This document shows, piece by piece, positions 30,415-64,000 of a stretch of DNA of 64,000 nucleotides; position 1 is the stretch's first letter; every line of letters begins with the position of its first letter. The translations under genes were made by a program, and so were the position numbers. The DNA is from Paramoeba atlantica (Eukaryota > Protista > Discosea), in contig CDRNVI010000040.1 in NCBI GenBank assembly GCA_977017575.1, positions 1-64,000 on the forward strand. The letters are read 5' to 3'. The notes beneath the pieces are model-generated. The model saw nothing but the letters and a program-made list of their open reading frames with translations, was not told the DNA's origin and made no database searches.

Positions 30415-30430
30415 TTTCTGTACCTTGTTG
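30415..30430 (+). other. 5'-truncated spliced-leader relic (TTTCTGTACCTTGTTG) at the 5' end of CRE-B
   Basis: Abuts the left target duplication; pyrimidine-rich UTR and ATG at 30460 follow. Confidence 0.8.
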
Positions 30431-30459: not shown

Positions 30460-33400
30460 ATGTCAGAACCTCCCCCGAGGGCGGCGCAAGGCACGCCGTC
30501 GCATCCGCAGCAGAACACTGCAGCAGTGAGGTCCACTGACGTAAAGGAGCACAACTTGAACTTTACGGAACAAGCGAATAGACACGAGATTGGATCATGG
30601 GACCAGTTTGAGGCAAACAAGAAACTCATCCAAGACGCTAGCACGTACGACGACCTCATGTACACAACCCCCATTCCGCAGCATATTCCCCTCAACTGGC
30701 AAAAGAAGATGGAACACAAAGCGCAAAGCATCGAGAAAAACCCAACGTCAGACCACGGCCGCCACAACACGAAAGACGAGGAAACCGCTTTTGCCAGTGT
30801 TCGGAGAAATGAAATTCTACGAAGAAGTCAAACTGGAGAGTCATCCTTGAAAATTAAGATCAGAAAAGAGACACGACTGAAGAAAACTCCGAAAAAGATA
30901 AAAGTGATACTCCGTAGCTCTGATCTAACGAAGGCGAACCTCGGACAAGCGGACATGTCACATGACGAAGGATCGGAGAGCTCATCTGCATCAGGATCAG
31001 ACATCTCGGAGGACGATCGGGTGGCCGAGGTCGCCGAAGAAACAATGAAAGCTCCGGACCAAATACTAAAGATAATCAACGACTGGGGAAAAGGAACTAC
31101 TTGCGAGCTACATTGGAAATTCCGCCACAGCAGTGAGATTTATCAGTCGATTGGAGAAGTTGTTACGCGACATTCTAGAAAAGGTGCAATCAGGGTAAAG
31201 ATTTCCTACACACCGCAGCATCAGCCAGGTCCATCAGGATTTCTATATCTACCTGCATCTCACAAGATTAACATCTTCCGATTACGGGTGGTAAAGCTCA
31301 ACCGTATTGTGACACAAACGCCATTTTTGGATATCGAAGAAACACAAGATTGTGACACGGGATGCGACTTGGAGCTTCTTCCCCCACTCGCCCACATCGA
31401 CCCCACGTTTGCCGCTCACGTCATAGCAATCTTTAGATCAATCCTGCGAGGATATCCCACGCTCAAGCTTATAACAGAGAAAACATCCGTCTGGCACAAG
31501 TTTCTAAACGCACCCCGCGACTCACTCACCACTGTGCGACAAGCGATCCAGCGGAAGTATCATGTGCCAAACAAATTGCGCAACGAGGAGCCGGCGTTCT
31601 CCTCACCTGACGAGAAACTTGAACGTGAAGTCGACCGCCGATCAATCCGCAGTGCGCTTCGAACGGCTAGGGCTGGTAACCTAAGCAAAGCTACGCGTAT
31701 CCTCGACAACGTATATTTTGACTCGAACCTTAGCGTTGAGGAGAAAGTAGCGGAGCTCAAGAGTCTACATCCCGATGGAGAGCGCCCACAAGCTCAGACG
31801 GACGCAGACCCCCGAACAGGAATCATCGAAAAACACGAACTTCGGGCCGCGATAGAGAAACTGGCTCCGGGAGCTTCCCCGGGCCCTACGGGATTGAGTG
31901 AAGCCATGTTGCGCCTACTTGCGGATGACGAGGAATCCAGCACCGCGCTCTGCCATATGTAGTGAACGGGGAGATCGCATCGTCGGTGCGTGACAGACTG
32001 ACACGATGTCGACTAATGGCCATCAACAAACCGCAGAACGGAATACGACCGATTGCAATTGGGGAGACTCTATTGAAAGTATGTGGCTCGATCCTTCTAA
32101 ACAGGAACGAAGAGAAACTGAAGAAATTTTTCCAGCCTGTCCAAAGAGGGATCCTCCAAAAGAATGCGTGCGAGGGAATTGTTCACGAGGTGCTCGATGA
32201 ATATGACAAGGGACACGCCATCTTGGCGATCGATTATAAGAATGCCTACAATACCCCCACGCGTCAAGCAATCTTCGAAGCACTCAAGAAAGACGGCATC
32301 TTCAAGCCTTTCATGCGGATTTTTAATCTTGAGTACGGGGACTCGTCTGATCTGCTCTTCTTTGCCAATAACTCGCCCCATTCGATCGTGAAGAGCACTT
32401 CTGGCGTTCGACAGCGCTCAGCGCTTTCGTCACTATACTTCTGTGCCCTGATACAGGATTCGCTCAAAGAAATCGAAGAGTCCTTTCCAGATGTAACGGT
32501 TCGAGCGTACATGGACGACATAACCTTGTCATCAACAAATCCCCTATCCTTGCAGACCGCCTTTCTACACCTGCACGAATCTTCACGACTTCTGGGACTG
32601 GAAATGAACTTCCAGAAATGCGAATGGTTCAAGAAAACAGACACTCCATGGACGCCCCAAACTCTGCAAGCGATGGGGGTAGCCTGCCCGCAAGAAACAG
32701 TGAAAATTCTAGGTGCATATATCGGACAGGACGAGATGGTAAGTGAATGCCTAAAGAAAAAGATGGACAAACACAAGTGTCTCTTTCGCCGTCTTCGACT
32801 CATGGGACCGAGCAACCTATCCCTCGCAATTCTGAATCGGTGCGCCATCCCCCGTCAAGACTATCACCTCCGAGTACACAAGCCCGAAGCATCCCTTGAA
32901 ATCGCCCAGCAGTTCGACGCGGAAGTAGGCAGTATTATTCAGCATTGGTTTAATGCAACGGGCCCTACTGCAAAACTCGCCACACTTCCGCAATATCTCG
33001 GCGGACTCGGACTTACTCCGTCATGTTTGAAGCAAAAGCACTTTTTCCAAGCGTCTCGCAAAGCCATTGAAGAGCAATCCAAAACCAATAACGCTCCGGT
33101 GGTCATAGCGGGATCCAAGCGAAACAGGGCTCTGAACGAACGTGGCAGCCAGAAGAATGATACTTCCAAGCGATTAGTCATGAAAGCAATACGATCTGAA
33201 CAAAAACGATTTGCAACCGAGCTGAGAAAGGACATGCGCCTCAAAGAACTAATGGAGCGAGGATCCGCATCATTTCACCACCTGCAATCAACCAGCAACT
33301 ACATCAATCCGTACCTCTTCCGTTTCTGTATAATGATGCGCCTGGGAATAGTGCCAGAAAATATGCCTAAGAGTGTGGTATGCCCGGGATGCCTGACAGA

Positions 33401-34022
33401 ATATTCTTCTGATACCATCTTCCAGCACATTCCTGGATGTACACAATGCTGTGGGATAAATGCAACGAAGAAGCACACACGATTAGTCCGTTTCCTAGGT
33501 GAATTGTGTGCCAAAGCAGGGGTGCCCCATGTTATAGAACCTCGAGTACATTCATCATTCTTCTGCACCAAATGTAAGGCCACCATATCCGAAGAGCTCT
33601 CTGAACATCACCCATGCAGAGCAAGACGTATGCGATCAGGCCCTGATCTCGGTATCATGTGGTCCCATCTCGGAGAAATTCTCTACGATGTCACCGTAGT
33701 TCACAGTTGTGCCCCGAGCTATGCCAAAACCTCCGTCGAGCAGTTAATCCAAAATGCCCTTGAGCGCAAGCACAAAAAATACGTTGTACAAGGAGGCATA
33801 CCGAAAGAAAGTTTCAGCTGCTTGGCAATGACCGAATTAGGACAGTTGCACAACAACACGAAAACTCTCATTGTCTCGCTCGCACAACGGTCACAACAAA
33901 ACGTGAAGGATGTCAAAGAAGCGTTCCAACTTGAAATAGAGAAGATGAACGCGTACACAATTGCCACGCAACTCCGACAATACTTTCCACCAATTCAGTG
34001 GCTCGGAGGACTTGAACACTAA
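30460..34022 (+). pseudogene. CRE-B polyprotein: LsmAD-like domain, N-terminal module, RT, RLE; frameshifting deletion near 31958
   Basis: WDQFEAN..STYDDLMYTT; GASPGPTG; RPIAIGE; YMDD; RSGPDL; YDVTVVH; homologue CHMLLDVVNG vs CHM*..NG here. Confidence 0.85.
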
Positions 34023-38250: not shown

Positions 38251-38856
38251 AGTCACACATTACTCGTCACACATGACGACCGGCTGGATTCATTCCGAAC
38301 TGGTCGTTTGCGCCCATGAACATCTGGTCGGGATGCTGGTCGGGTCGACAGAGTCTATGCTCACGCCTAGTCCGTCAGGGCTAGGTACCCCAAGTGAGGT
38401 AGTACACGGGTAGTGAATCTCCTCCCCGTCGACCAGCATCCTGTTTCGCGACCGTGTCGCTGTCGACACAGGCCCGCGCCTGCGCCCTCCCATATAGCAA
38501 GGGAAGGGTTCACAAGTCAGGCCGTGGAGAGGTCGAAAGACCCGGTCCGGGACGCGCGAATGGATTGGGTCTGTATTGCTTGTTTTAGTTTTTACTGTTT
38601 CTTGTTTGTATTATATACTTAGGGGAGATTAAATTGCTAGTTTTGGGCTGAGAGAAAAAACAATAGGTACATCTGTGGAAACAAAAAGATTTGCTAAAAA
38701 AATTTTCAAATTGCTAATTTGATTGTTTGTTTTCAACTCGTATCCCCCCCCCCCCCAATGGACCTACTTGGTTCGTCTACTGGGTCAAAATATAGAGGCA
38801 ATGCCGCGTTTTATACTTCTCCCCCCTTATTAAAAAAAAAAAAAAAAAAAAAAAAA
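38251..38856 (+). other. Orphan 3' UTR + poly(A) of a CRE family II element
   Basis: Shares a 50-nt block with 55864-55913 and a 52-nt terminal block with 52036-52087; A25 at 38832-38856. Confidence 0.7.
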
Positions 38857-40512
38857 CTTCCACCTGATCCCTCATCTGAATTATTGGAGCGCGCTGACAA
38901 GATTGCCTGCGACATTAAGAACTCTACAGAAGGCGAAACGCCAGACACAGGACACCAGAATGCTACCACCGAAGAAGAACTGTTCTCCAGTGTCCGCCCG
39001 ACGGAAAGCCTCGAGTTCCAATTCGAAGGAGCCAATTCCTCTTCACTCAGCCAATTAAAGTCCTCTAGCAAGGCTGTGAAGGAGAAGTACGAGCGCCATA
39101 ACCGCAGGGTAGGCTGTGCCGAATATGACTATGCTGATAACAGGCTAGTTTTTCCTGATCTCACGCCTCCTGATCTTCGCTTCTCAGTAAAGGGTAGCAG
39201 TAAAGGCCGTAAAAAGAAGAAACGCCCGAAGGGCATCAATCTTTCTCAGCTGGATGCAGTGTCCGGGGCCGACAGCGAGGAACGCGACAATATAGAGTCC
39301 AGCGCGAATTCACCCGGGCCACGCACTCATGCCACCGGAGTCATGGACAGCCCGTCTATCAAATTGTCCCAAAAGGAACAGAACACTAACACCCCCACGG
39401 GTAAGCGTAAACGTCACGTGCAGGTGTCGAAACCAGGGCCACGCGATTCCTCAGATACCGAAAGGCTCAATCAACCCCCCAATACCACTCCAGAAAAGCC
39501 ACCTACAGTCAATGGAAACACGCGGAAATGTCCTTCTCAGGGATGTGCATGGCAAACTGTGCCTCACGGGGGCCAATGGCAATCCTTTTATAACCACGTA
39601 TCCCACAGACACGGGGACGAGGTGCCTGATACCTGGTGGAACGAGGAGGGACGTTTCCGATGCAGGGATTGCAACAGGCACTACAACCTAAGCAAACAGG
39701 TCACCCATGCCGAAAACTGCGCTTTCCGCTGCTCTTCTCCCCCACCTATCTCCGAACCTACACAGACAGGGGGCGACCCGAGGGACAACCCTGCATTTTT
39801 TGCCGCACAAGCCGTCGCCGAACCCCTTCCCTCCCTGGCGTCAATCTGTTCGACACCTCTCAACACATGCAAAGACATTCCCAACAGCTGTCGCCAGGGG
39901 TGGGCGAAAGTCTTCTGTGAGTGTCTCTCTTCCGCTGTACGAGACAATACAGTTGAGGCCTGGACTCTTCTCGCCATGCTACCGAAATGCGTACTACCGG
40001 CACCTCATCGTGGGGGGAGCAGGGCAAAACTATCGTACGCCTCGCACGTTCGGAAGTGTCTCGCCCGGTGGTCACGGAAAGAATTTCTCCCCCTTTGGAA
40101 CGAAACAATTGCGAGCCTACAACACAAAAAACGCGTCGCACAAGCACAGAGTCCGGAGGACGAGATAACCAAATCTGCTATGCGAGCTGAAAGACTCGTT
40201 CGCGACTCGGAACTATCTCGAGCTATGGCTGCCCTAACCTCTGAACCAGTAGCCCCGTATGACGATGATACTTACACTAAACTCCAAGCTAAGCATCCAT
40301 CCCGACTCGCTACGTCGGTGAAACCCCTCAGTTCTTCGACGGAAATGGGACCAAAACCACTTCGAGCCACAGAGGAAGACGTAACGCAGGCTCTTGCAAC
40401 TTTTCACCGGGGGTCATCGGGTGGCGCTTTTGGGCTACGCCCTGAACACGTACAAGTGGCACTAGAGTACCACCATGACGGCCGTACGGATCCATTGGGT
40501 ACACTGACCCAT

Positions 40513-52000: not shown

Positions 52001-52144
52001 TTTGATTGCTTATTTTCAACTCGTATACCCCCCCCAATGGACCTACTTGGTTCGTCTACTGGGTCAAAATATAGAGGCAATGCCGCGATTCATACTCCTC
52101 CCCCCTTATTAATTGCAAAAAAAAAAAAAAAAAAAAAAGACAAG

Positions 52145-52176
52145 AACGATAAAGATACAGTTTCTGTACCTTGTTG
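52145..52176 (+). other. Spliced-leader exon relic at the 5' end of CRE2b
   Basis: Same 32-mer; ATG at 52221. Confidence 0.85.
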
Positions 52177-52220
52177 AATTATTTTTATTAACCCACTATT
52201 TTCCCTAGCAGGGTCTCACC

Positions 52221-55200
52221 ATGCCACACGACGACCTCTTCGATGCGAATGCAGTACCCATGGACGACGACTCTTTCCGTCAGGAAGAAATTTCGCACAA
52301 CACGGGTGCTTGGGACCAATTTGCAGGAAACGCACATTTAATTCCCGGTCAGAGCTCCTACGATGAACTCTTGTACACAACACCGATTCCCAAACATATC
52401 CCCAAACACTGGGCAAAAAGAGCCGCCAAGATCGCCGGAGAGGCTCCCACGCCGGACACGGGAAGAATGACGGAAGATGAAGAGACGAATCACTCCCTCG
52501 TCGTGGAAGCAAGCCCGAGAAACACACCGGAGGTTCCTGACGCCCAAGTACCTTCTCCAAACAAGGCCTCGAAGCGCAAGAACATAAATCCGGTACCGAT
52601 CCCGCAGCACTGTACTCAGCGCGTATGCCCAGCTGAAGGATGCACTTGGAAGACTCCTCCTCACGGTGGGCAATGGCAAGCATTTTACAATCATGTGGCC
52701 CACCGACACGGAGAAAGCGTACCAACCACTTGGTGGGAGGGGGAGGGAAGATTTCTTTGCAAGGACTGCTGCAGGCACTACGATAAGAACAAGGAGAATT
52801 CTCACCCCAAACAGTGCAAAGGCCGTAACCACCCCGTGCGATCTCAAACCCCACCTAGGCCAACGACAAGTCTCGAAAATGCAACTGAAATTCCTCCAGA
52901 AAACATGCTACCAACGTTGAGCTCTATCTGCGCGCTGCCCATAAGCACATGCAAAGATGTCCCCCATTCCTGTAGGTTTCTATGGGCGAGCATTTTGACA
53001 CAGGTCATGACATCTGCTGTGCAAGAAAACACAGTGGAGGCATGGACGTTACTGGCAATGCTCCCTAAATGCGTCTTACCTGCACCTTACCGAGGCGGTC
53101 GCAAAGGACACACGTCATACTCTACATACGTGGAAAAAAGCATGGAACTCTGGCTAGAAGGGGAGTACCTCTTGCTCTGGGAACAGGCCCTAAAGGATCA
53201 CGCCAAAAAACGCTCCAAGCCTAGAAGTTCCGAAAATGAAGAAGAAAGAGCGGCAATCAGGGCAGAAATACTGTCACGTCAAGGGGAATACTCTAGGGGA
53301 ATAGCCGCTCTAACCGCAGCACCCATGGCGCCGGACAACGAGGAGACCCTTGCGAAGCTTCTAGAAAAGCACCCAAATCCTCACGAAAACCCACTTGAGA
53401 ACGATCTTCCACCGATTGAGGGTAATCCCCTGCGTCTGGAGGAAGTGGAAGTCAGGAAAGCGGTCGAAAGTTTTCGCAGAGGGTCTTCTGCCGGAACAAT
53501 GGGTCTACGTCCAGAACACATCCAGGCCGCCATTTTGGAACACGCCAACAAGAAGGTGGGTCCTCTTTCGTCCCTCACTCGCCTCGTGAACCACATGCTC
53601 CAAGGAAAGGCACCGCCAGAGGTACAACTGTTCTACGCTGGAGCCCGTCTCTGCGCTCTGGAGAAAGGTGAAGAAGATGTCCGACCCATAGCAGCAGGCG
53701 AAACCCTCAGACGTCTAGTAAGCAAAGCGGCATGCGTCGCCGTAAAGGAGAAGGCTGAAACTTTATTCCGGGGAAGACAGTATGGTGTGGCTGCATCCGC
53801 GGGGGCCGAACGAGTAATTCATCTGTGCCGGAAAACAATGCTAAACAACATGGGGAGCGACAGTCTTGTTCTCTGTAAGGTAGACCTCAGAAATGCGTTC
53901 AACAACGTCAGCAGGCCTGTCTTCACTTTGCTCACACGTCTCAATTTTCCAGAACTTTCACCCTGGGTGGAATGGTGCTACACAAACCCGAGTTGTCTTA
54001 CCTACGGGAATCACTTCCTATCCTCAGCCGAAGGCGTCCAGCAAGGTGACCCATTGGGTCCGCTTCTCTTCTCTCTAGTCCTTTCTGGGGTAACCGAGGA
54101 AATATCATCCCGATCAAACCTAGATTCGCAACTATGGTATTTGGACGACGGAGTTCTCATGGGGGAGGCGGCGGAGGTTCGAAAGGCGCTTGATGTTTTT
54201 TCCGAGGTTGGTTCACAATGCGGGCTATTTCTGAATCCGAACAAGTGTGAAATAATAACGCCACCTGCCTCAGCCCATCACACGACTTTATTTCCGGAAA
54301 TACCTACCGCCAAAATTCGTGTTGACGGGAATTTCGATATTCTCGGATCCCCGATTGGGTCTGCGGAGCACTGCGCGGAGTTCCTAATGTCTCACGCCAT
54401 CGAACCCGCACGCGAGACTCTCGCAGCAATAGGGCTAATAGGCGATCCACAAGTTGCCATCGCCCTCATCCGCCAGTGCACTGGCTTCTGCCAAATGGTG
54501 TACGCTCTCCGCACCACACCCCCCCAGGCTCTTTTTCAACTTTGTAGCCTACTAGACGAAACCGTTCTTAAAGCTGTCGAGTGGGCACTTTTCCCCCTGG
54601 AACCCCACGCACGTGACCAAATCCAACGAAGGAAACGCCACGGAGGTTTCGGCCTTAGGTCTGCAACACTCCACGCGACAGCCGCTTACGTTTCTTCCGT
54701 CGCGCACGCCGCCGACATAGACGACTGGGATCCTACAGAGGCTGATGGATTCGCCATTTCGGTACAAGACGTAAACCGTAAAGCAGGAGTAGCGCTAGTG
54801 GATCCCAACACGGGGCGCACACCCAAGCAGGACAAGCCACTCCCATACTCAGGCCACCATCACAACTTCCTCCCGAAAAGGAAACGCCCACGGAGCACTC
54901 AAAACAAAATGGAAGCGGACAGGGCAACCGCGCCGGAGATGGTCATCCCTCGACAGCAGCAACTCAGCCAGGCTATCTCACAGCAGGAATTCACCACAGC
55001 ATACGAGCAGGCTGACCCTCGCACTCGCGCACGGTGGGTTTCAGAGTCGGGTAAGGGAGCAGGTAGCTGGGCTTTCGTGACGCCCTCTAGGAGCAAAGGA
55101 TACGCCTTCACACCAACAGAGTTCCGCACGCTGTCCCGCTGGTGGCTGGGATCCGACATCTATCAAGAAGATCGCCCTTGCCCAGCGAAGGGATGCATAT

Positions 55201-55799
55201 TACCTCTGCAGAAAAATGGGGAACATGCATTGTTATGTAAGAACGGACATGGCCTCATCACCCGTCACAACGCGGTCTGTGAGCAATTCACAGCATTCTG
55301 CAGAAAAGCCGACATAGCTCCGCAAAGGGAGAAAAGCCTGGGAAATCGTGGTCCAAGAGGGGGTCTCACCAGACCTGCTGACGTGTTTCTCCCGAATTAC
55401 ACCCTGGGAAGTGGTATGGTGTTAGACTTCGCAGTCACCCACGCACAGCAACTAAAGTATTTGGACTCTGTCCGGAATGCTAGCTGGGTGGCTGCAGGAT
55501 CTTTCGCTGAACACTACTCAGCAACGAAGGATAAACAACGCCAGGAAGCGGAGGAAGCGAAATTACTTTTTACGGCCATGGTAGTTGAATCCTTTGGCTC
55601 GTGGAGTAAAAGCGCGATGGCTGTTTTGTGGAAGGTGGGGGCGTTACGCGCAAACGCGTCAAACGGTCTACTCACAGACACTCAAGCCCGAAATGACCTT
55701 CTCAAAGAGCTGAACGTGGCTCTCATGCGCTCCCAGGCCCGGATGATGGTCTCTAGGATAGTCGTCAGTGACCCTGACGCTCCCCTGGAAGGGGCCTAA
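52221..55799 (+). CDS. CRE2b polyprotein, intact (LsmAD-like, Zn fingers, RT, RLE), 1192 aa
   Basis: WDQFAGN..SSYDELLYTT; CP..GC..H...H and C..C..H fingers; QQGDPLGPLLF; WYLDDG; RHNAV; RPADVF; VLDFAVTH. Confidence 0.9.
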   Translation: MPHDDLFDANAVPMDDDSFRQEEISHNTGAWDQFAGNAHLIPGQSSYDELLYTTPIPKHIPKHWAKRAAKIAGEAPTPDTGRMTEDEETNHSLVVEASPRNTPEVPDAQVPSPNKASKRKNINPVPIPQHCTQRVCPAEGCTWKTPPHGGQWQAFYNHVAHRHGESVPTTWWEGEGRFLCKDCCRHYDKNKENSHPKQCKGRNHPVRSQTPPRPTTSLENATEIPPENMLPTLSSICALPISTCKDVPHSCRFLWASILTQVMTSAVQENTVEAWTLLAMLPKCVLPAPYRGGRKGHTSYSTYVEKSMELWLEGEYLLLWEQALKDHAKKRSKPRSSENEEERAAIRAEILSRQGEYSRGIAALTAAPMAPDNEETLAKLLEKHPNPHENPLENDLPPIEGNPLRLEEVEVRKAVESFRRGSSAGTMGLRPEHIQAAILEHANKKVGPLSSLTRLVNHMLQGKAPPEVQLFYAGARLCALEKGEEDVRPIAAGETLRRLVSKAACVAVKEKAETLFRGRQYGVAASAGAERVIHLCRKTMLNNMGSDSLVLCKVDLRNAFNNVSRPVFTLLTRLNFPELSPWVEWCYTNPSCLTYGNHFLSSAEGVQQGDPLGPLLFSLVLSGVTEEISSRSNLDSQLWYLDDGVLMGEAAEVRKALDVFSEVGSQCGLFLNPNKCEIITPPASAHHTTLFPEIPTAKIRVDGNFDILGSPIGSAEHCAEFLMSHAIEPARETLAAIGLIGDPQVAIALIRQCTGFCQMVYALRTTPPQALFQLCSLLDETVLKAVEWALFPLEPHARDQIQRRKRHGGFGLRSATLHATAAYVSSVAHAADIDDWDPTEADGFAISVQDVNRKAGVALVDPNTGRTPKQDKPLPYSGHHHNFLPKRKRPRSTQNKMEADRATAPEMVIPRQQQLSQAISQQEFTTAYEQADPRTRARWVSESGKGAGSWAFVTPSRSKGYAFTPTEFRTLSRWWLGSDIYQEDRPCPAKGCILPLQKNGEHALLCKNGHGLITRHNAVCEQFTAFCRKADIAPQREKSLGNRGPRGGLTRPADVFLPNYTLGSGMVLDFAVTHAQQLKYLDSVRNASWVAAGSFAEHYSATKDKQRQEAEEAKLLFTAMVVESFGSWSKSAMAVLWKVGALRANASNGLLTDTQARNDLLKELNVALMRSQARMMVSRIVVSDPDAPLEGA

Positions 55800-59083: not shown

Positions 59084-60120
59084 CGGATTAGAACGGTTTC
59101 GCCGCAGACCTGCTTCAATTTCGGCGCATTCCTGCCCAATCTGCGCCTCAATTTCTTCTCCGTGCTCTTTTAGCACTTCCTTGAAGTGGTCCGGTTTTCG
59201 ACTCTGAAGAAATAAGTCGCGAAACCCTGAGATGCGCGGTGTTTCTGTACCCGGTGGTGTGTTTTCTGTCCCTGTAGGCGCGTTGGTCGTTTTTGTGGTT
59301 CGGTCCTTTTTTGAGAGTCTTTTCGCTGTGTGTACCATATTTTCCGATAAGTGTTCCCATGTGATCTCTTCCTCTTTCTTCGCCATTTCCCACACTGCTT
59401 GCTGGAAGGATGCCTTCTTCTCTTCATCTCCAAGTCTTGGCCAGGGTACCTTGCTTTGCCCCCCTGTACCTTTAGAACGCCACATGATTTTCACATCCGC
59501 CATAACGACGCAGTGTACTGTAGGCACTGGCGCCTTGAGTACTTTGTGCCTCCTAATGCTGGAGGCAAAGCGCTCACTGACCATGATGTGGTCAAGCTGT
59601 CTCCGCACCTTGTTGTCCCCACGCCTTTTGCTACCTCCCTTGTTGCCGACCTCCCCTTTTACGTGCATGTACTCACAGGCCTTGTCCCCATTTTCCTCTC
59701 CTTCCCTTCCCCTCTTCACCATACCGTTGTTATCCGTCCCCTCTGGCTCTGATCCTTTCCTTCCCATTTCCACCTTTCCTTCTTCCCCCTTCTGCCCCAC
59801 CTTCTCTGTTCCTACGTTGCGACGGTCCTTTGTCTCCGCTCTCCTGCCCGGCAGCTCACATGTCCATTTCCTCTTGCTCGGGCAGAGGGTGTGTGCTGAC
59901 TTACAGCCAATGGGGCACAAGAGGCCTTTCAGCTGAGAGACCGCTGGGGGATCCATGCTCGGATTCGTCACGAGCGTTATCGGTGCATTGAAATCCCCCA
60001 TGACCAATAAAGGTCTTCGTTTCCGTTCAGCCTTGACCTCACGACACGCCTTGTCCAAGTCACCCAGAAATGCCGCATGAACGGCTTCTGAGGAGTCCCG
60101 TATTGGGGCATAGACATTGC
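59084..60120 (-). pseudogene. LINE4: APE-domain fragment of the RTE-like family
   Basis: NVYAPIRDS, GDFNAP, KSAH..CPS.RKWTC, RQLDHIMVS; closest to LINE3. Confidence 0.8.
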
Positions 60121-60129
60121 ATAGACATT

Positions 60130-62120
60130 TGCCCAAACAAATAAATAAACTGCGCCCGATCGCTATAGGAGAGACCATCCTTAAAGTGTGTGGCATCATT
60201 CTTTTGCAACGACATGAAGACGCGCTTAAAAAGCACTTTCAAACCTTCCAACGAGGCATACTACAAAAGAATGCGTGTGAGCAAATTGTGCATGAACTGA
60301 TAGAAGAATACGAGGCAGACCACAAGATCGTCACAGTCGATTACACTAACGCATTCAACACACCAAACAGAATCGCCATTGCAGAAACTCTTCAAAAGCA
60401 TGATGTTTTCAGACCATTTATGCGCCTCTTTTTCCTAGAGTACTCCGAGCCATCTGATCTTCTTTTCTTTGCTGACAACACACTCTATTCAACAATCAAA
60501 AGCACATCTGGAGTACGACAAGGTTCAGCGCTCTCATCTCTCTGCTTTTGTAGCTTAATACATCCCATCCTAGCTGAAGTAGCCGATCTTTTTCCTGAAG
60601 TCACGATCCGAGCATACATGTATATGGACGACATCACGCTTTCATCTCGAAACACTTTATCCCTAGAAGCCGCTTTCCTCCATCTTCAAGAACTTTCTAA
60701 AGACTTATCACTTGATGTCAACTGCAATAAAACAGAGTGGTTTCAGAAAGGAGCAAAAAACTGTCCACTGGCATTGCAGAAAGCTGGTCTATCGTCACCG
60801 GAGAAATCTGTCAAGATCCTAGGCGCCTACATAGGGGAGAATGAGGACGTTAGTGAAAAGCTCGTACGACAGTCAGTAAAGCATGTATGCCTTTTTCGAC
60901 GTTTGCAAATCATGGGCCCAAGCAATCTTTCGTTAGCAATGTTGCAACGATGCACGATTCCACGACAGGATTACTTTTTGCGCGTCCACAAACCAGCAGC
61001 TACACTGAAAATTGCGGAATGCTTCGATGTTGAAATATCAAGAATTATCTCACACTGGTTTCTCGCCACAGGTGACTCACTCTGCCTCGCAACTCTACCG
61101 CAAAAAATGGGAGGTCTTGGTCTCACTCAGTCCACCTTAAAGCAACGGTACTTTTTTGAAGCAGCCAGACGATCTATTGATGAGCATAAAATATCCACTA
61201 AAGCTCCGGTAGGTCAACAAGCTGTTGAGAAAGTTAGTGGCGTTACTTTGAATCCGATGAAAATAAAAACTAAGACCTCTAAAGCAATTCGCGAAGAGCA
61301 AACAAAAGTGCTGTCAGAAATCAAAGCAAACAAGCGATTAAGTGAAGTCATTAGCAAAACAAAGGACTCGAATTCACTCTTGGTCTCCACTAATGATTAC
61401 ATCAATCCCTATCTTTTCCGATATTCCATAATGATGCGATTGGGGATATCACTCCCGAAAGCCTCAGGGATTTGCCATTGTCCGGGATGCGGGTCACAGC
61501 AAGAAGGAAACGGCCTTCTTCATCATGTTGCGGGCTGCGCACAATGTTCAGGTATGAACACCACGAAGAAACACACACACCTGATCCGTTTGCTTTCAGA
61601 TTTATGCACCAAGGCTGGGCTCCCTCACGTGGTCGAACCTCGAGTACATGCTTCATTCTATTGCACAAAGTGCAAGGCAAGTATTTCTGCAGATGCAGCT
61701 GAACGACATGCGTGTAGAGCGCATCGGATACGTTCTGGTCCTGACTTGGGAATAATGTGGCCTCACCAGGGAGAGATATTGTATGACGTAACTGTTGTAC
61801 ATACTTGTACGGTGTCAAATGCAAAGTTCACCCCTGAACAACTAATGGAAAACGCACTGGCCAGGAAAAATAAAAAGTATGTAGAACAGAATGGTTTGGA
61901 ACCAGAGGCGTTCAAATGCTTAGCGGTGACTGATTGTGGGCTTCTCCATGAAGACACTAAAAGACTCATCTCTGTTTTAGCAGCACGGGCACACCTCAAT
62001 CCTAAAGACACACGCGATGCCTTCCGACTAGCAGTTGAAAAATTCAATGCATACACAGTTGTATGCCAACTAAGAGACGTGATCCCACACTGCAACTGGA
62101 TAGGCGGACTAAGTAACTAA
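60130..62120 (+). pseudogene. 5'-truncated CRE family I element (RT + RLE)
   Basis: RPIAIGE, RQGSALSS, AYMYMDD (6-nt duplication), RSGPDL, YDVTVVH. Confidence 0.85.
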
Positions 62121-62690: not shown

Positions 62691-62722
62691 CTTTCTCTTG
62701 TTAAGACCCTTTCTTTTGTTAA
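62691..62722 (+). repeat. Two-unit 18-bp repeat CTTTCT(C/T)TTGTTAA(GACC)
   Basis: Period 18, TAAGACC core. Confidence 0.65.
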
Positions 62723-62731
62723 AAAAAAAAA

Positions 62732-62757
62732 AAAGATACAGTTTCTGTACCTTGTTG
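62732..62757 (+). other. Spliced-leader relic at the 5' end of CRE2c
   Basis: AAAGATACAGTTTCTGTACCTTGTTG after an A-run; ATG at 62787. Confidence 0.85.
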
Positions 62758-62786: not shown

Positions 62787-64000
62787 ATGGTTCTAACTCG
62801 CTCTAAAGCAAAACAGGAATCCAACTTTGATCGCGAAGCGGGCGCGCACAAGCTCGGTTCATGGGACCAGTTTCAGGCAAACAAAGACCTGGTTAAAGGC
62901 GCTAGCACATACAAGGAAGAGCTGTACACGACACCACTTCCGCCGGATCCTTCATCAGAATTAGAACAACGGGCCGAAGACATTGCCCTCAGCATTACGA
63001 ACTCCATCGAAGGCGTGACACCAGACACAGGGCGTCAGCAAACGAGCTCGGAAGAAGAATTATTTTCCAGCGTCCGTCCCACCGAGAATTCCGTTTTCCA
63101 GTTCGAAGGGGCCGCTCCTTCTTCACTCAGCCAATCGAAATCTACAAACAAGGCTGTGAAGGAGAAATGCGAGCGCCACAACCGGGGGATAGCTCGTACC
63201 GAATACAATTATGACGACGACAAATTAATTCTCCCCGACCTGACGCCTCAAGACCTCGACTTTTCGTTGAGCGGTGGAACCAAAGTAAGGAAAAAGAAAA
63301 AGCGCCCTAAAGGGATCTCACTTTCCCAGCTACATACCCAGTTATGCACCGAGTCTGGGGGCGACAGTGATGACCGTGACTCCACAGATGCGTCAACAAG
63401 TGTTCACAGCTCTCCGGCTGAATCACCCCTGAAGAAGTTAACCCCGAAAATGGCTGTAGGCAAACGTAAACGTCCCCAGCAGGTGTCGAAAACTACCTCC
63501 CCTGACGCCCCCAAAGCCGAAACAATGAACAATGCCCCCGAATCGACCCCAACCCAAAACTGTGCGATAGAAAAAACACACACCACGCATGAAAATACGC
63601 GAAAATGTCCCTTCGAGGGATGTACTTGGAAAACAGGGCCCCACGGGGGCCAATGGCAGGCATTCCACAACCACGTAGCAAACAGACACAGTGATGAGGT
63701 CCCAGACGAGTGGTGGAAAGACGAAGGACGTTTTAGGTGTCATGATTGCAATCAACATTATGATCAAGGCAAACTGGAAACCCATGACAAGATCTGCATG
63801 TTCCGCCATTCCTCTCCTCAAAGCCGTCCGTCGCCCTCGACGAGCAGTGCCGATCCTGTTCTAAGCCCCAATGTGGACTCGAATGCTCTTCCTGCCCTTA
63901 ACTCACCTTCCACACCCTCTCATCAAAGCGTAGTAAGCGAAAACGTGAAAGTCTCCGACACACCCCTTCCGAGTTTATCCTCTATCAGTGCGCTACTTAT
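62787..64000 (+). CDS. CRE2c polyprotein N-terminus (LsmAD-like, Zn fingers); runs off the window
   Basis: Hand translation: MVLTRSKAK..GSWDQFQANKDLVKGASTYKEELYTT..EEELFSSVRP; CPFEGCTW..GPHGGQW; homologous to 38857 onward. Not in the ORF track because it has no stop in the window. Confidence 0.8.
   Translation, partial: MVLTRSKAKQESNFDREAGAHKLGSWDQFQANKDLVKGASTYKEELYTTPLPPDPSSELEQRAEDIALSITNSIEGVTPDTGRQQTSSEEELFSSVRPTENSVFQFEGAAPSSLSQSKSTNKAVKEKCERHNRGIARTEYNYDDDKLILPDLTPQDLDFSLSGGTKVRKKKKRPKGISLSQLHTQLCTESGGDSDDRDSTDASTSVHSSPAESPLKKLTPKMAVGKRKRPQQVSKTTSPDAPKAETMNNAPESTPTQNCAIEKTHTTHENTRKCPFEGCTWKTGPHGGQWQAFHNHVANRHSDEVPDEWWKDEGRFRCHDCNQHYDQGKLETHDKICMFRHSSPQSRPSPSTSSADPVLSPNVDSNALPALNSPSTPSHQSVVSENVKVSDTPLPSLSSISALL

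Follow-up and report, generated by a model that had tools for sequence, protein, structure and literature searches.

In a 64,000-nucleotide stretch of DNA deposited under Paramoeba atlantica (GenBank assembly GCA_977017575.1, contig CDRNVI010000040.1, positions 1 to 64,000 of the forward strand; hereafter the window), four segments are shown by profile and alignment to encode true LsmAD domains, at the very N-terminus of the protein belonging to non-LTR (non-long-terminal-repeat) retrotransposons of the restriction-like endonuclease (RLE) type. The ataxin-2 family is defined by this domain and has links to SCA2 (spinocerebellar ataxia type 2) and ALS (amyotrophic lateral sclerosis), and deletion of the domain is lethal in flies. 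We consider it very probable that these elements captured an LsmAD and that selection has kept it. The domain starts about 20-45 residues from the N-terminus of a single open reading frame (ORF), and the protein continues with a zinc knuckle, a reverse transcriptase (RT), a CCHC motif and the RLE. A first-pass annotation of the window had already proposed that LsmAD homologues are fused to the N-terminus of retrotransposon RT proteins; Pfam and a reciprocal profile search bear this out, and the peptides it quoted are present in the translation of 30592-30807 and at the three further places it gave.

A six-frame scan with a profile of the 95-residue element domain alone found exactly four LsmAD segments in the window, at 30571-30840 (copy A, which encloses the 30592-30807 of the first-pass annotation), 38854-39036 (copy B), 52281-52538 (copy C) and 62832-63113 (copy D); as that profile included three of the four window families, the scan gives the number of segments and not their significance. 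Significance comes from the Pfam LsmAD model (PF06741, curated cut-off 25 bits), a check suggested in the first-pass annotation, which scored copy D well over the cut-off (62856-63080, 34.9 bits, E 2e-8). Scores were lower for the ORFs of copy A (at 30460; 19.5 bits, E 0.0014), copy C (at 52221; 19.8 bits, E 0.0011) and copy B (at 38719; 15.4 bits), with copy C reaching 24.1 bits, or 25.6 with its neighbours, in a scan of the genome. Copies A, B and C are thus at or under the Pfam cut-off, yet they fall within the same alignment as copy D. Across the whole genome (45.7 Mb) there are at least 102 LsmAD matches and at least 90 element copies over the cut-off; in all, at least 100 LsmAD-bearing element copies are spread over many families.

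The reciprocal search gave the same picture. A hidden Markov model built from 12 element domains and no host sequence recovered 114 proteins of ataxin-2 type, with scores of 12.9-62.2 bits and a median of 51.9 bits. Among 1.84 billion representative proteins, a profile search returned 1543 matches at E<=1e-3, element-type proteins first and then proteins of ataxin-2 layout, which make up most of the matches. P0182 (1350 aa) carries bacterial cell-surface domains (SLH, cohesin) and has nine stretches that match the LsmAD profile (E 2e-11); it is most likely a repeat-driven false match.

Likeness to the LsmAD of ataxin-2/Pbp1/PBP1 extends to signature residues, length and predicted helix order. 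The signature W-x-QF-x-x-N ... STY-x-E-x-x-YTT ... A ... EE ... S-x-V is present in the element domains, and in an alignment of 80 sequences from elements and ataxin-2 its Q, F, N, Y, T and E never vary, with W, E, A, E and V nearly constant. By ESM-Atlas features, residues 1-120 lie closest to a cluster named 'LsmAD domain-containing protein' (0.92, 181 features in common). The element N-terminus and the host domain were both modelled with AlphaFold2 (AF2); helix order agrees between the two models, as does the confidence peak, which falls on the long helix in each. The models are flexible (pLDDT 73 and 75, pTM 0.35), in agreement with the published poor folding of isolated human ataxin-2 LsmAD, which modulates the LSm domain and binds no RNA when alone (PMC11898529). 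An Atlas fold search with the model of the element domain gave no match, and no solved LsmAD structure turned up when the PDB was searched by sequence with the host domain. There are also differences from ataxin-2 and PBP1: LsmAD is fused to an RT protein, and the LSm (SM-ATX) domain, PAM2 and the long disordered tail are absent. Pfam matched no LSm domain in the element proteins, in which only 20-45 residues precede LsmAD, and a pattern search found no PAM2 motif in 14 of them. In host PBP1, the stretch LNPNARAFTP resembles PAM2 by eye, no motif search of that protein having been made. Judged by their domain content, with neither LSm nor PAM2, the element proteins carry LsmAD but are not members of the ataxin-2 family.

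The nearest relative of the element domain is the PBP1 of the present genome itself. The two best genomic LsmAD matches are alleles of the host PBP1/ataxin-2 gene (SM-ATX 31.1 bits, LsmAD 48.6 bits), which adjoins a TruD gene. A tree of 137 LsmADs groups 23 element domains with host PBP1 and a single metagenomic PBP1-like protein (support 100/97) and leaves 101 ataxin-2 and 10 diplonemid LsmADs outside this clade, which has support 97 in a reduced tree. Element monophyly has support 100/75 in the full tree, and a quick tree concurs. Features common to host and elements and absent from other LsmADs are SH-x-GSWDQF, L(V/I)xG where FGV is usual, and TT(P/S)IP, and they include residues upstream of the Pfam boundary. 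For comparison, PBP1 of Bodo saltans (supplement of PMC12898128) has FGVKTTYKEEMYTTTLD where host PBP1 has LVRGKSTYDELLYTTSIP, and B. saltans was accordingly rejected as the host. Relative to the ataxin-2/PBP1 domain, the element LsmAD has lost about 8 residues, and an N-x-H-x-x-E/D-R-G stretch has become TPDTG(H/R). Of the 114 public proteins related to that of copy C, just 7 carry LsmAD, all of them from the European Nucleotide Archive (ENA); the assembly of the one LsmAD-bearing ENA contig that we looked up also contains exact copies of genes of the present genome. As the first-pass annotation had supposed, the element LsmAD derives from the host, and tree and shared residues show its source to be the host's own PBP1/ataxin-2 lineage and not a distant donor. 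As for the host gene itself, the first 138 residues of its longest frame (L031:3848-4261) are low-complexity and F-rich with PPWTPP repeats, and its true start is probably the Met just ahead of the LSm domain.

Substitution patterns show purifying selection on LsmAD at roughly the strength seen for the RT. In five independent pairs the non-synonymous to synonymous ratio (pN/pS) of LsmAD was 0.18-0.34, with a pooled value of 0.25 (Fisher p 8e-51). The only pair with unsaturated dS gave a dN/dS of 0.16 for LsmAD, 0.12 for the RT and 0.26 for the adjacent linker, and in every pair dN was lower in LsmAD than in the linker (0.09-0.22 vs 0.18-0.38). A sceptical possibility is that the domain is a functionless captured fragment or a chance resemblance, for which one could cite the two of four window copies that score under the Pfam cut-off. 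This is contradicted already by the selection and profile results, that is by the pooled pN/pS, a dN below that of flanking sequence and reciprocal scores with a median of 52 bits; the domain is moreover kept across families whose RTs are only 23% identical. We hold it to be improbable in the extreme.

Two RT lineages share the module. Copies A and C are 23% identical over 335 RT residues and 53% identical over LsmAD, and in general family A differs from the other families far more in RT (23-26% identity) than in LsmAD (47-53%); copies C and D, by comparison, are 48% identical in LsmAD and 61% in RT. Because identity between the lineages is twice as high in LsmAD as in the RT, the module is younger than the RT split; it either passed between lineages or was taken on two occasions from one and the same host gene. 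The earlier proposal that two RT-distinct families keep a captured domain was right that both lineages carry it and too simple in its history, the module having moved or been captured after the RTs diverged. The 8-residue deletion and a T(P/S)D-x-G motif common to the element domains lead us to favour one capture followed by exchange; an approximately unbiased (AU) test does not decide between the two histories, as it did not reject a grouping of family A with the host domain (p 0.52).

That LsmAD sits on two very different protein bodies also speaks against a purely internal role. In ataxin-2, LsmAD helps the neighbouring LSm domain to fold and to bind RNA; by analogy, the element LsmAD would assist a part of the same protein that binds RNA or DNA, with no need of a host partner. 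The reported behaviour of human LsmAD, poorly folded alone and modulating its LSm neighbour (PMC11898529), and the flexible helical segments of the AF2 models (pTM 0.35) would suit such a helper. There is, however, no LSm domain before or after LsmAD in the element protein by Pfam, and the linker that follows evolves twice as fast as the domain (dN 0.18-0.38 vs 0.09-0.22). We think an internal helper unlikely.

The ends of the elements indicate what kind of RNA serves as template. Full-length copies start with a piece of spliced leader (SL) that ends TTTCTGTACCTTGTTG and measures 16 nt in family A, against 23-35 nt in the remaining families, followed by a short 5' untranslated region (UTR) and then the ATG. 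Such a relic lies near the start in 52 of the 53 5' ends examined. An A run of at least 8 abuts it in 31 of the 53 copies, the remaining flanks being unrelated sequence; copies of the C, D and E types lie mostly downstream of A runs, often the tails of other copies, and the flanks of family A are varied. At its 3' end copy D has a conserved tail and then poly(A), and the same tail and poly(A) occur just upstream of copies B and C. Head-to-tail elements are seen at 52040-52176, 38760-38856, 62721-62757 and L034:7040-7200, where a 3' tail (...ctccccccttatta...) and poly(A) precede the SL relic or truncated 5' end of the next copy. This arrangement suggests that A tracts, among them the tails left by earlier copies, receive new insertions. 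The hallmark of CRE elements, insertion at one fixed site in spliced-leader genes, was not seen in the 53 5' flanks. As the relic is the 3' part of the leader joined to a 5' UTR, the layout is the one expected of a trans-spliced RNA template and not of insertion into an SL gene; the template looks like an ordinary trans-spliced, polyadenylated host mRNA.

In our estimate the most likely role of LsmAD, at somewhat under even odds, is that of an adaptor to the PBP1/poly(A)-tail messenger ribonucleoprotein (mRNP). Element RNAs would resemble host mRNAs, with an SL relic at the start and poly(A) at the end. A stand-alone LsmAD would act as a protein-protein adaptor, since the LsmAD of ataxin-2 alone binds no RNA, and would link newly made RT protein to the partner normally bound by the LsmAD of PBP1 in the PBP1/PABP poly(A)-tail mRNP. 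The RT protein would thereby stay with the mRNA that encodes it, at the 3' end from which target-primed reverse transcription begins, and/or the element mRNA would gain PBP1-like stabilisation. In Trypanosoma brucei, complexes of PBP1, LSM12, PABP and MKT1 increase the expression of mRNAs to which they are tethered (10.1101/2020.03.02.973057), and in human cells PABPC1 promotes formation of the LINE-1 (L1) RNP and retrotransposition (PMC4782638). L1 is likewise a non-LTR element with a poly(A) tail, and its RNP needs the poly(A)-tail machinery. The parallel has a limit, in that L1 uses PABPC1 via its RNA and encodes no part of the machinery, whereas in the present elements part of a host protein associated with PABP is built into the element protein.

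Metagenomic relatives of the same RT lineage point to the same poly(A) machinery. They are 37-38% identical to copy C over 87-90% of its length (P0030, 34% over 91%) and carry other modules instead of LsmAD: a C-terminal PABP MLLE domain in P0023 and P0024 (L048:1308-4991), an N-terminal Prim-Pol domain in P0025 and ubiquitin repeats in P0030. The MLLE domains, in relatives about 38% identical, score 46.8 and 49.3 bits, and no LsmAD was found in P0023, P0024, P0025 or P0030. Taken as a whole, our reading is that LsmAD may be a portable docking module derived from PBP1, passed between unrelated RT lineages or taken twice, that plugs the RT directly into the poly(A)-tail particle which PBP1 and PABP form on the element's SL-capped mRNA, as relatives would do with the MLLE of PABP; we put the probability of this composite at roughly 0.3.

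Several observations weigh against the reading of a captured adaptor. A 2026 review states that neither the function nor an interaction partner of LsmAD is known (PMC12898128), and with no known LsmAD partner in any organism the adaptor step has no experimental anchor. The element proteins lack PAM2, and the element was not found in any RNA run; in what may be an RNA run carrying the same species label, the contigs match the SL part alone (52145-52186), near their ends. On the side of origin, the bootstrap of the 137-LsmAD tree is not fully settled, and the 150 best matches used for the tree include no named kinetoplastid PBP1 (Bodo, Trypanosoma), so that the time of capture is only loosely bounded. 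That absence follows from a word-index search with residues 130-360 of host PBP1, which found no homologue; no Bodo-type LsmAD was among the fetched proteins. Two results weigh neither way. A complex prediction of the host PBP1 LSm domain with the element LsmAD (residues 12-105) scored 0.00, and the LSM12 AD-domain family (PF09793) had no match in the genome and none in any control genome either, which makes its absence uninformative.

Published binding data modify the partners first proposed for the domain. The first-pass annotation had tied LsmAD to binding of Mkt1, and this does not hold: the Mkt1-binding region of yeast Pbp1 is residues 491-549, outside LsmAD (PMC12345631). As for its link to DDX6, binding has been mapped only to the LSm/LSmAD region as a whole and not to LsmAD itself, for which no partner is known (PMC12898128). 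The T. brucei preprint on PBP1-associated proteins makes no mention of LsmAD (10.1101/2020.03.02.973057).

The facts that suit an adaptor would suit a decoy as well. A host-derived, selected LsmAD without the LSm and PAM2 of PBP1 might compete with PBP1 for its partner and so weaken a host mRNP or granule pathway that silences or sequesters element RNA, and the structured domains of ataxin-2 are indeed thought to act via bound proteins (PMC7946432). A competitor of this kind would not need to be fused to the RT protein, of which non-LTR elements usually make little, and the MLLE-carrying relatives look like recruiters; we rate a decoy as an outside chance. Lower still is our estimate for a targeting signal, by which LsmAD would set the location of the protein in the manner of the Golgi/ER (endoplasmic reticulum) signals reported in human LsmAD. 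The review that describes a Golgi effect of LsmAD deletion also finds the motifs poorly conserved and the evidence equivocal (PMC12898128), and we think this very unlikely. Docking on the poly(A)-tail mRNP remains the role that we prefer.

In the layout of their protein the elements resemble R2 and the CRE clade (CRE1/2, SLACS, CZAR; described in PMC12278014), with a single ORF, an N-terminal zinc knuckle, an RT, a C-terminal CCHC motif and PD...D endonuclease, and a poly(A) tail; the RT was identified by RVT_1 (63-73 bits) and the zinc knuckle, CCHC and PD...D by pattern only. The nearest solved chain to copy C is the Bombyx R2 protein (8GH6, E 4e-7), which makes these RLE-type non-LTR retrotransposons; R2Bm is the reference matched for RT class, and the CRE label of the first-pass annotation is a tentative one. 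They differ from CRE and R2 in their N-terminal host domain, which is not reported for either, and from CRE in lying outside spliced-leader genes.

The four copies, all on the forward strand, differ in how much of this layout they keep. Copy C is intact: a 31-nt SL relic (52146..52176), immediately downstream of the poly(A) run (52117-52138) that belongs to the element before it, is followed by an intact single ORF of 1192 aa (52221..55799; RVT_1 63.4 bits). This encodes LsmAD (residues ~21-106), a zinc knuckle (52758-52817, residues 180-199), the RT (~53664-54260, residues 482-680), the CCHC motif (55179-55250, residues 987-1010) and the RLE motif RPAD...LDFAVT (55371-55439, residues 1051-1073). 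Copy D starts with a 23-nt relic (62735..62757) after an A run at 62721-62734; its intact ORF of 1347 aa opens at 62787, leaves the window at 64000 and runs to contig position 66830, and the full protein (L034:2788-6828) scores 30.0 bits for LsmAD and 63.7 bits for RVT_1.

Copy A, of family A, begins with its 16-nt SL 3' relic, TTTCTGTACCTTGTTG, at 30415..30430; the same relic heads 11 other family-A copies, whose upstream flanks are unrelated. Its ORF is broken: 500 residues run from the element ATG (30460..31962), and after a frame shift at 31962 the second part (31962..34022) encodes the RT (~32022-32714; RVT_1 73.4 bits) and, by pattern, CCHC (33381-33617) and a PD...D RLE motif (33642-33698). 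Copies elsewhere that are 97-99% identical have one frame of 1214-1226 aa. The LsmAD of copy A was placed by Pfam, the element-profile scan and alignment to host PBP1. A 100% identical twin of copy A (30460-34022) with the same frame break lies on another contig (C63:632717-634216), so that a segmental duplication or a haplotig seems more likely than two separate insertions. Copy B is 5'-truncated and begins inside LsmAD directly after a 26-nt A run that ends the 3' tail of another element; it keeps only the C-terminal half of the domain (profile positions 35-95) and matches L051/P0115, placing it in the same family as L051. A 667-aa RT/RLE ORF at 60117-62120 belongs to the family-A lineage, being clearly similar to the second ORF part of copy A; it has no LsmAD upstream in the window and is probably a 5'-truncated copy. 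Rfam gave no RNA family at gathering score in the window.

A few LsmADs stand apart from both elements and ataxin-2. An ORF of 360 aa is present twice in the genome (C48:75467-76546, reverse strand, and C90:84283-85362, forward strand; P0147, L069:6001-7083) and ends in an LsmAD (26.4 bits) that is 45-51% identical to element domains and 38% to host PBP1; over its first 260 residues there is no match to PBP1 or to a Pfam family. The ORF may represent acquisition of the element module by a host gene, or else a gene-model accident. A third genomic LsmAD (43 and 31 bits; C163:169015-169329, reverse strand; L033:5015-5329) has the canonical FGV form; its two parts lie on an AT-rich contig with about 117 nt between them. 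A gene with an intron, or DNA from another organism, may account for it. Elsewhere, five proteins carry repeated LsmADs without ataxin-2 layout: P0127 (KAJ9472136.1, Diplonema papillatum), P0135, P0138, P0140 and P0144, with a PDZ domain in P0127 and P0144 and an RRM in P0127 and P0135. The last four are taken as diplonemid because their LsmADs fall in one clade with P0127 (100/99). Going by domain layout, LsmAD is not strictly confined to ataxin-2 in Euglenozoa.

The fusion appears to be new, as the first-pass annotation had suspected: a full-text literature search found no paper that joins LsmAD and retrotransposons. A 2026 catalogue of ataxin-2 chimeras contains no reverse transcriptase or transposon in text or supplements, and the review to which it belongs treats LsmAD as unique to ataxin-2, practically all LsmAD-containing sequences found being ataxin-2 orthologues (PMC12898128). 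A 2025 paper on the trypanosomatid mobilome lists no LsmAD-type domain for CRE elements (PMC12278014).

For transposon biology, the elements add a further case of host-domain capture, one aimed at the mRNA 3'-end machinery, and evidence that such modules move between element lineages. For the ataxin-2 family, they offer a natural stand-alone LsmAD, free of LSm, PAM2 and disordered regions. Selection for it on more than 100 mobile copies, interested only in their own RNA and its reverse transcription, narrows the roles that the domain may have. The element LsmAD is also a compact bait for a partner search and, if the docking reading is true, would reveal the long-sought partner and function of the LsmAD of ataxin-2.

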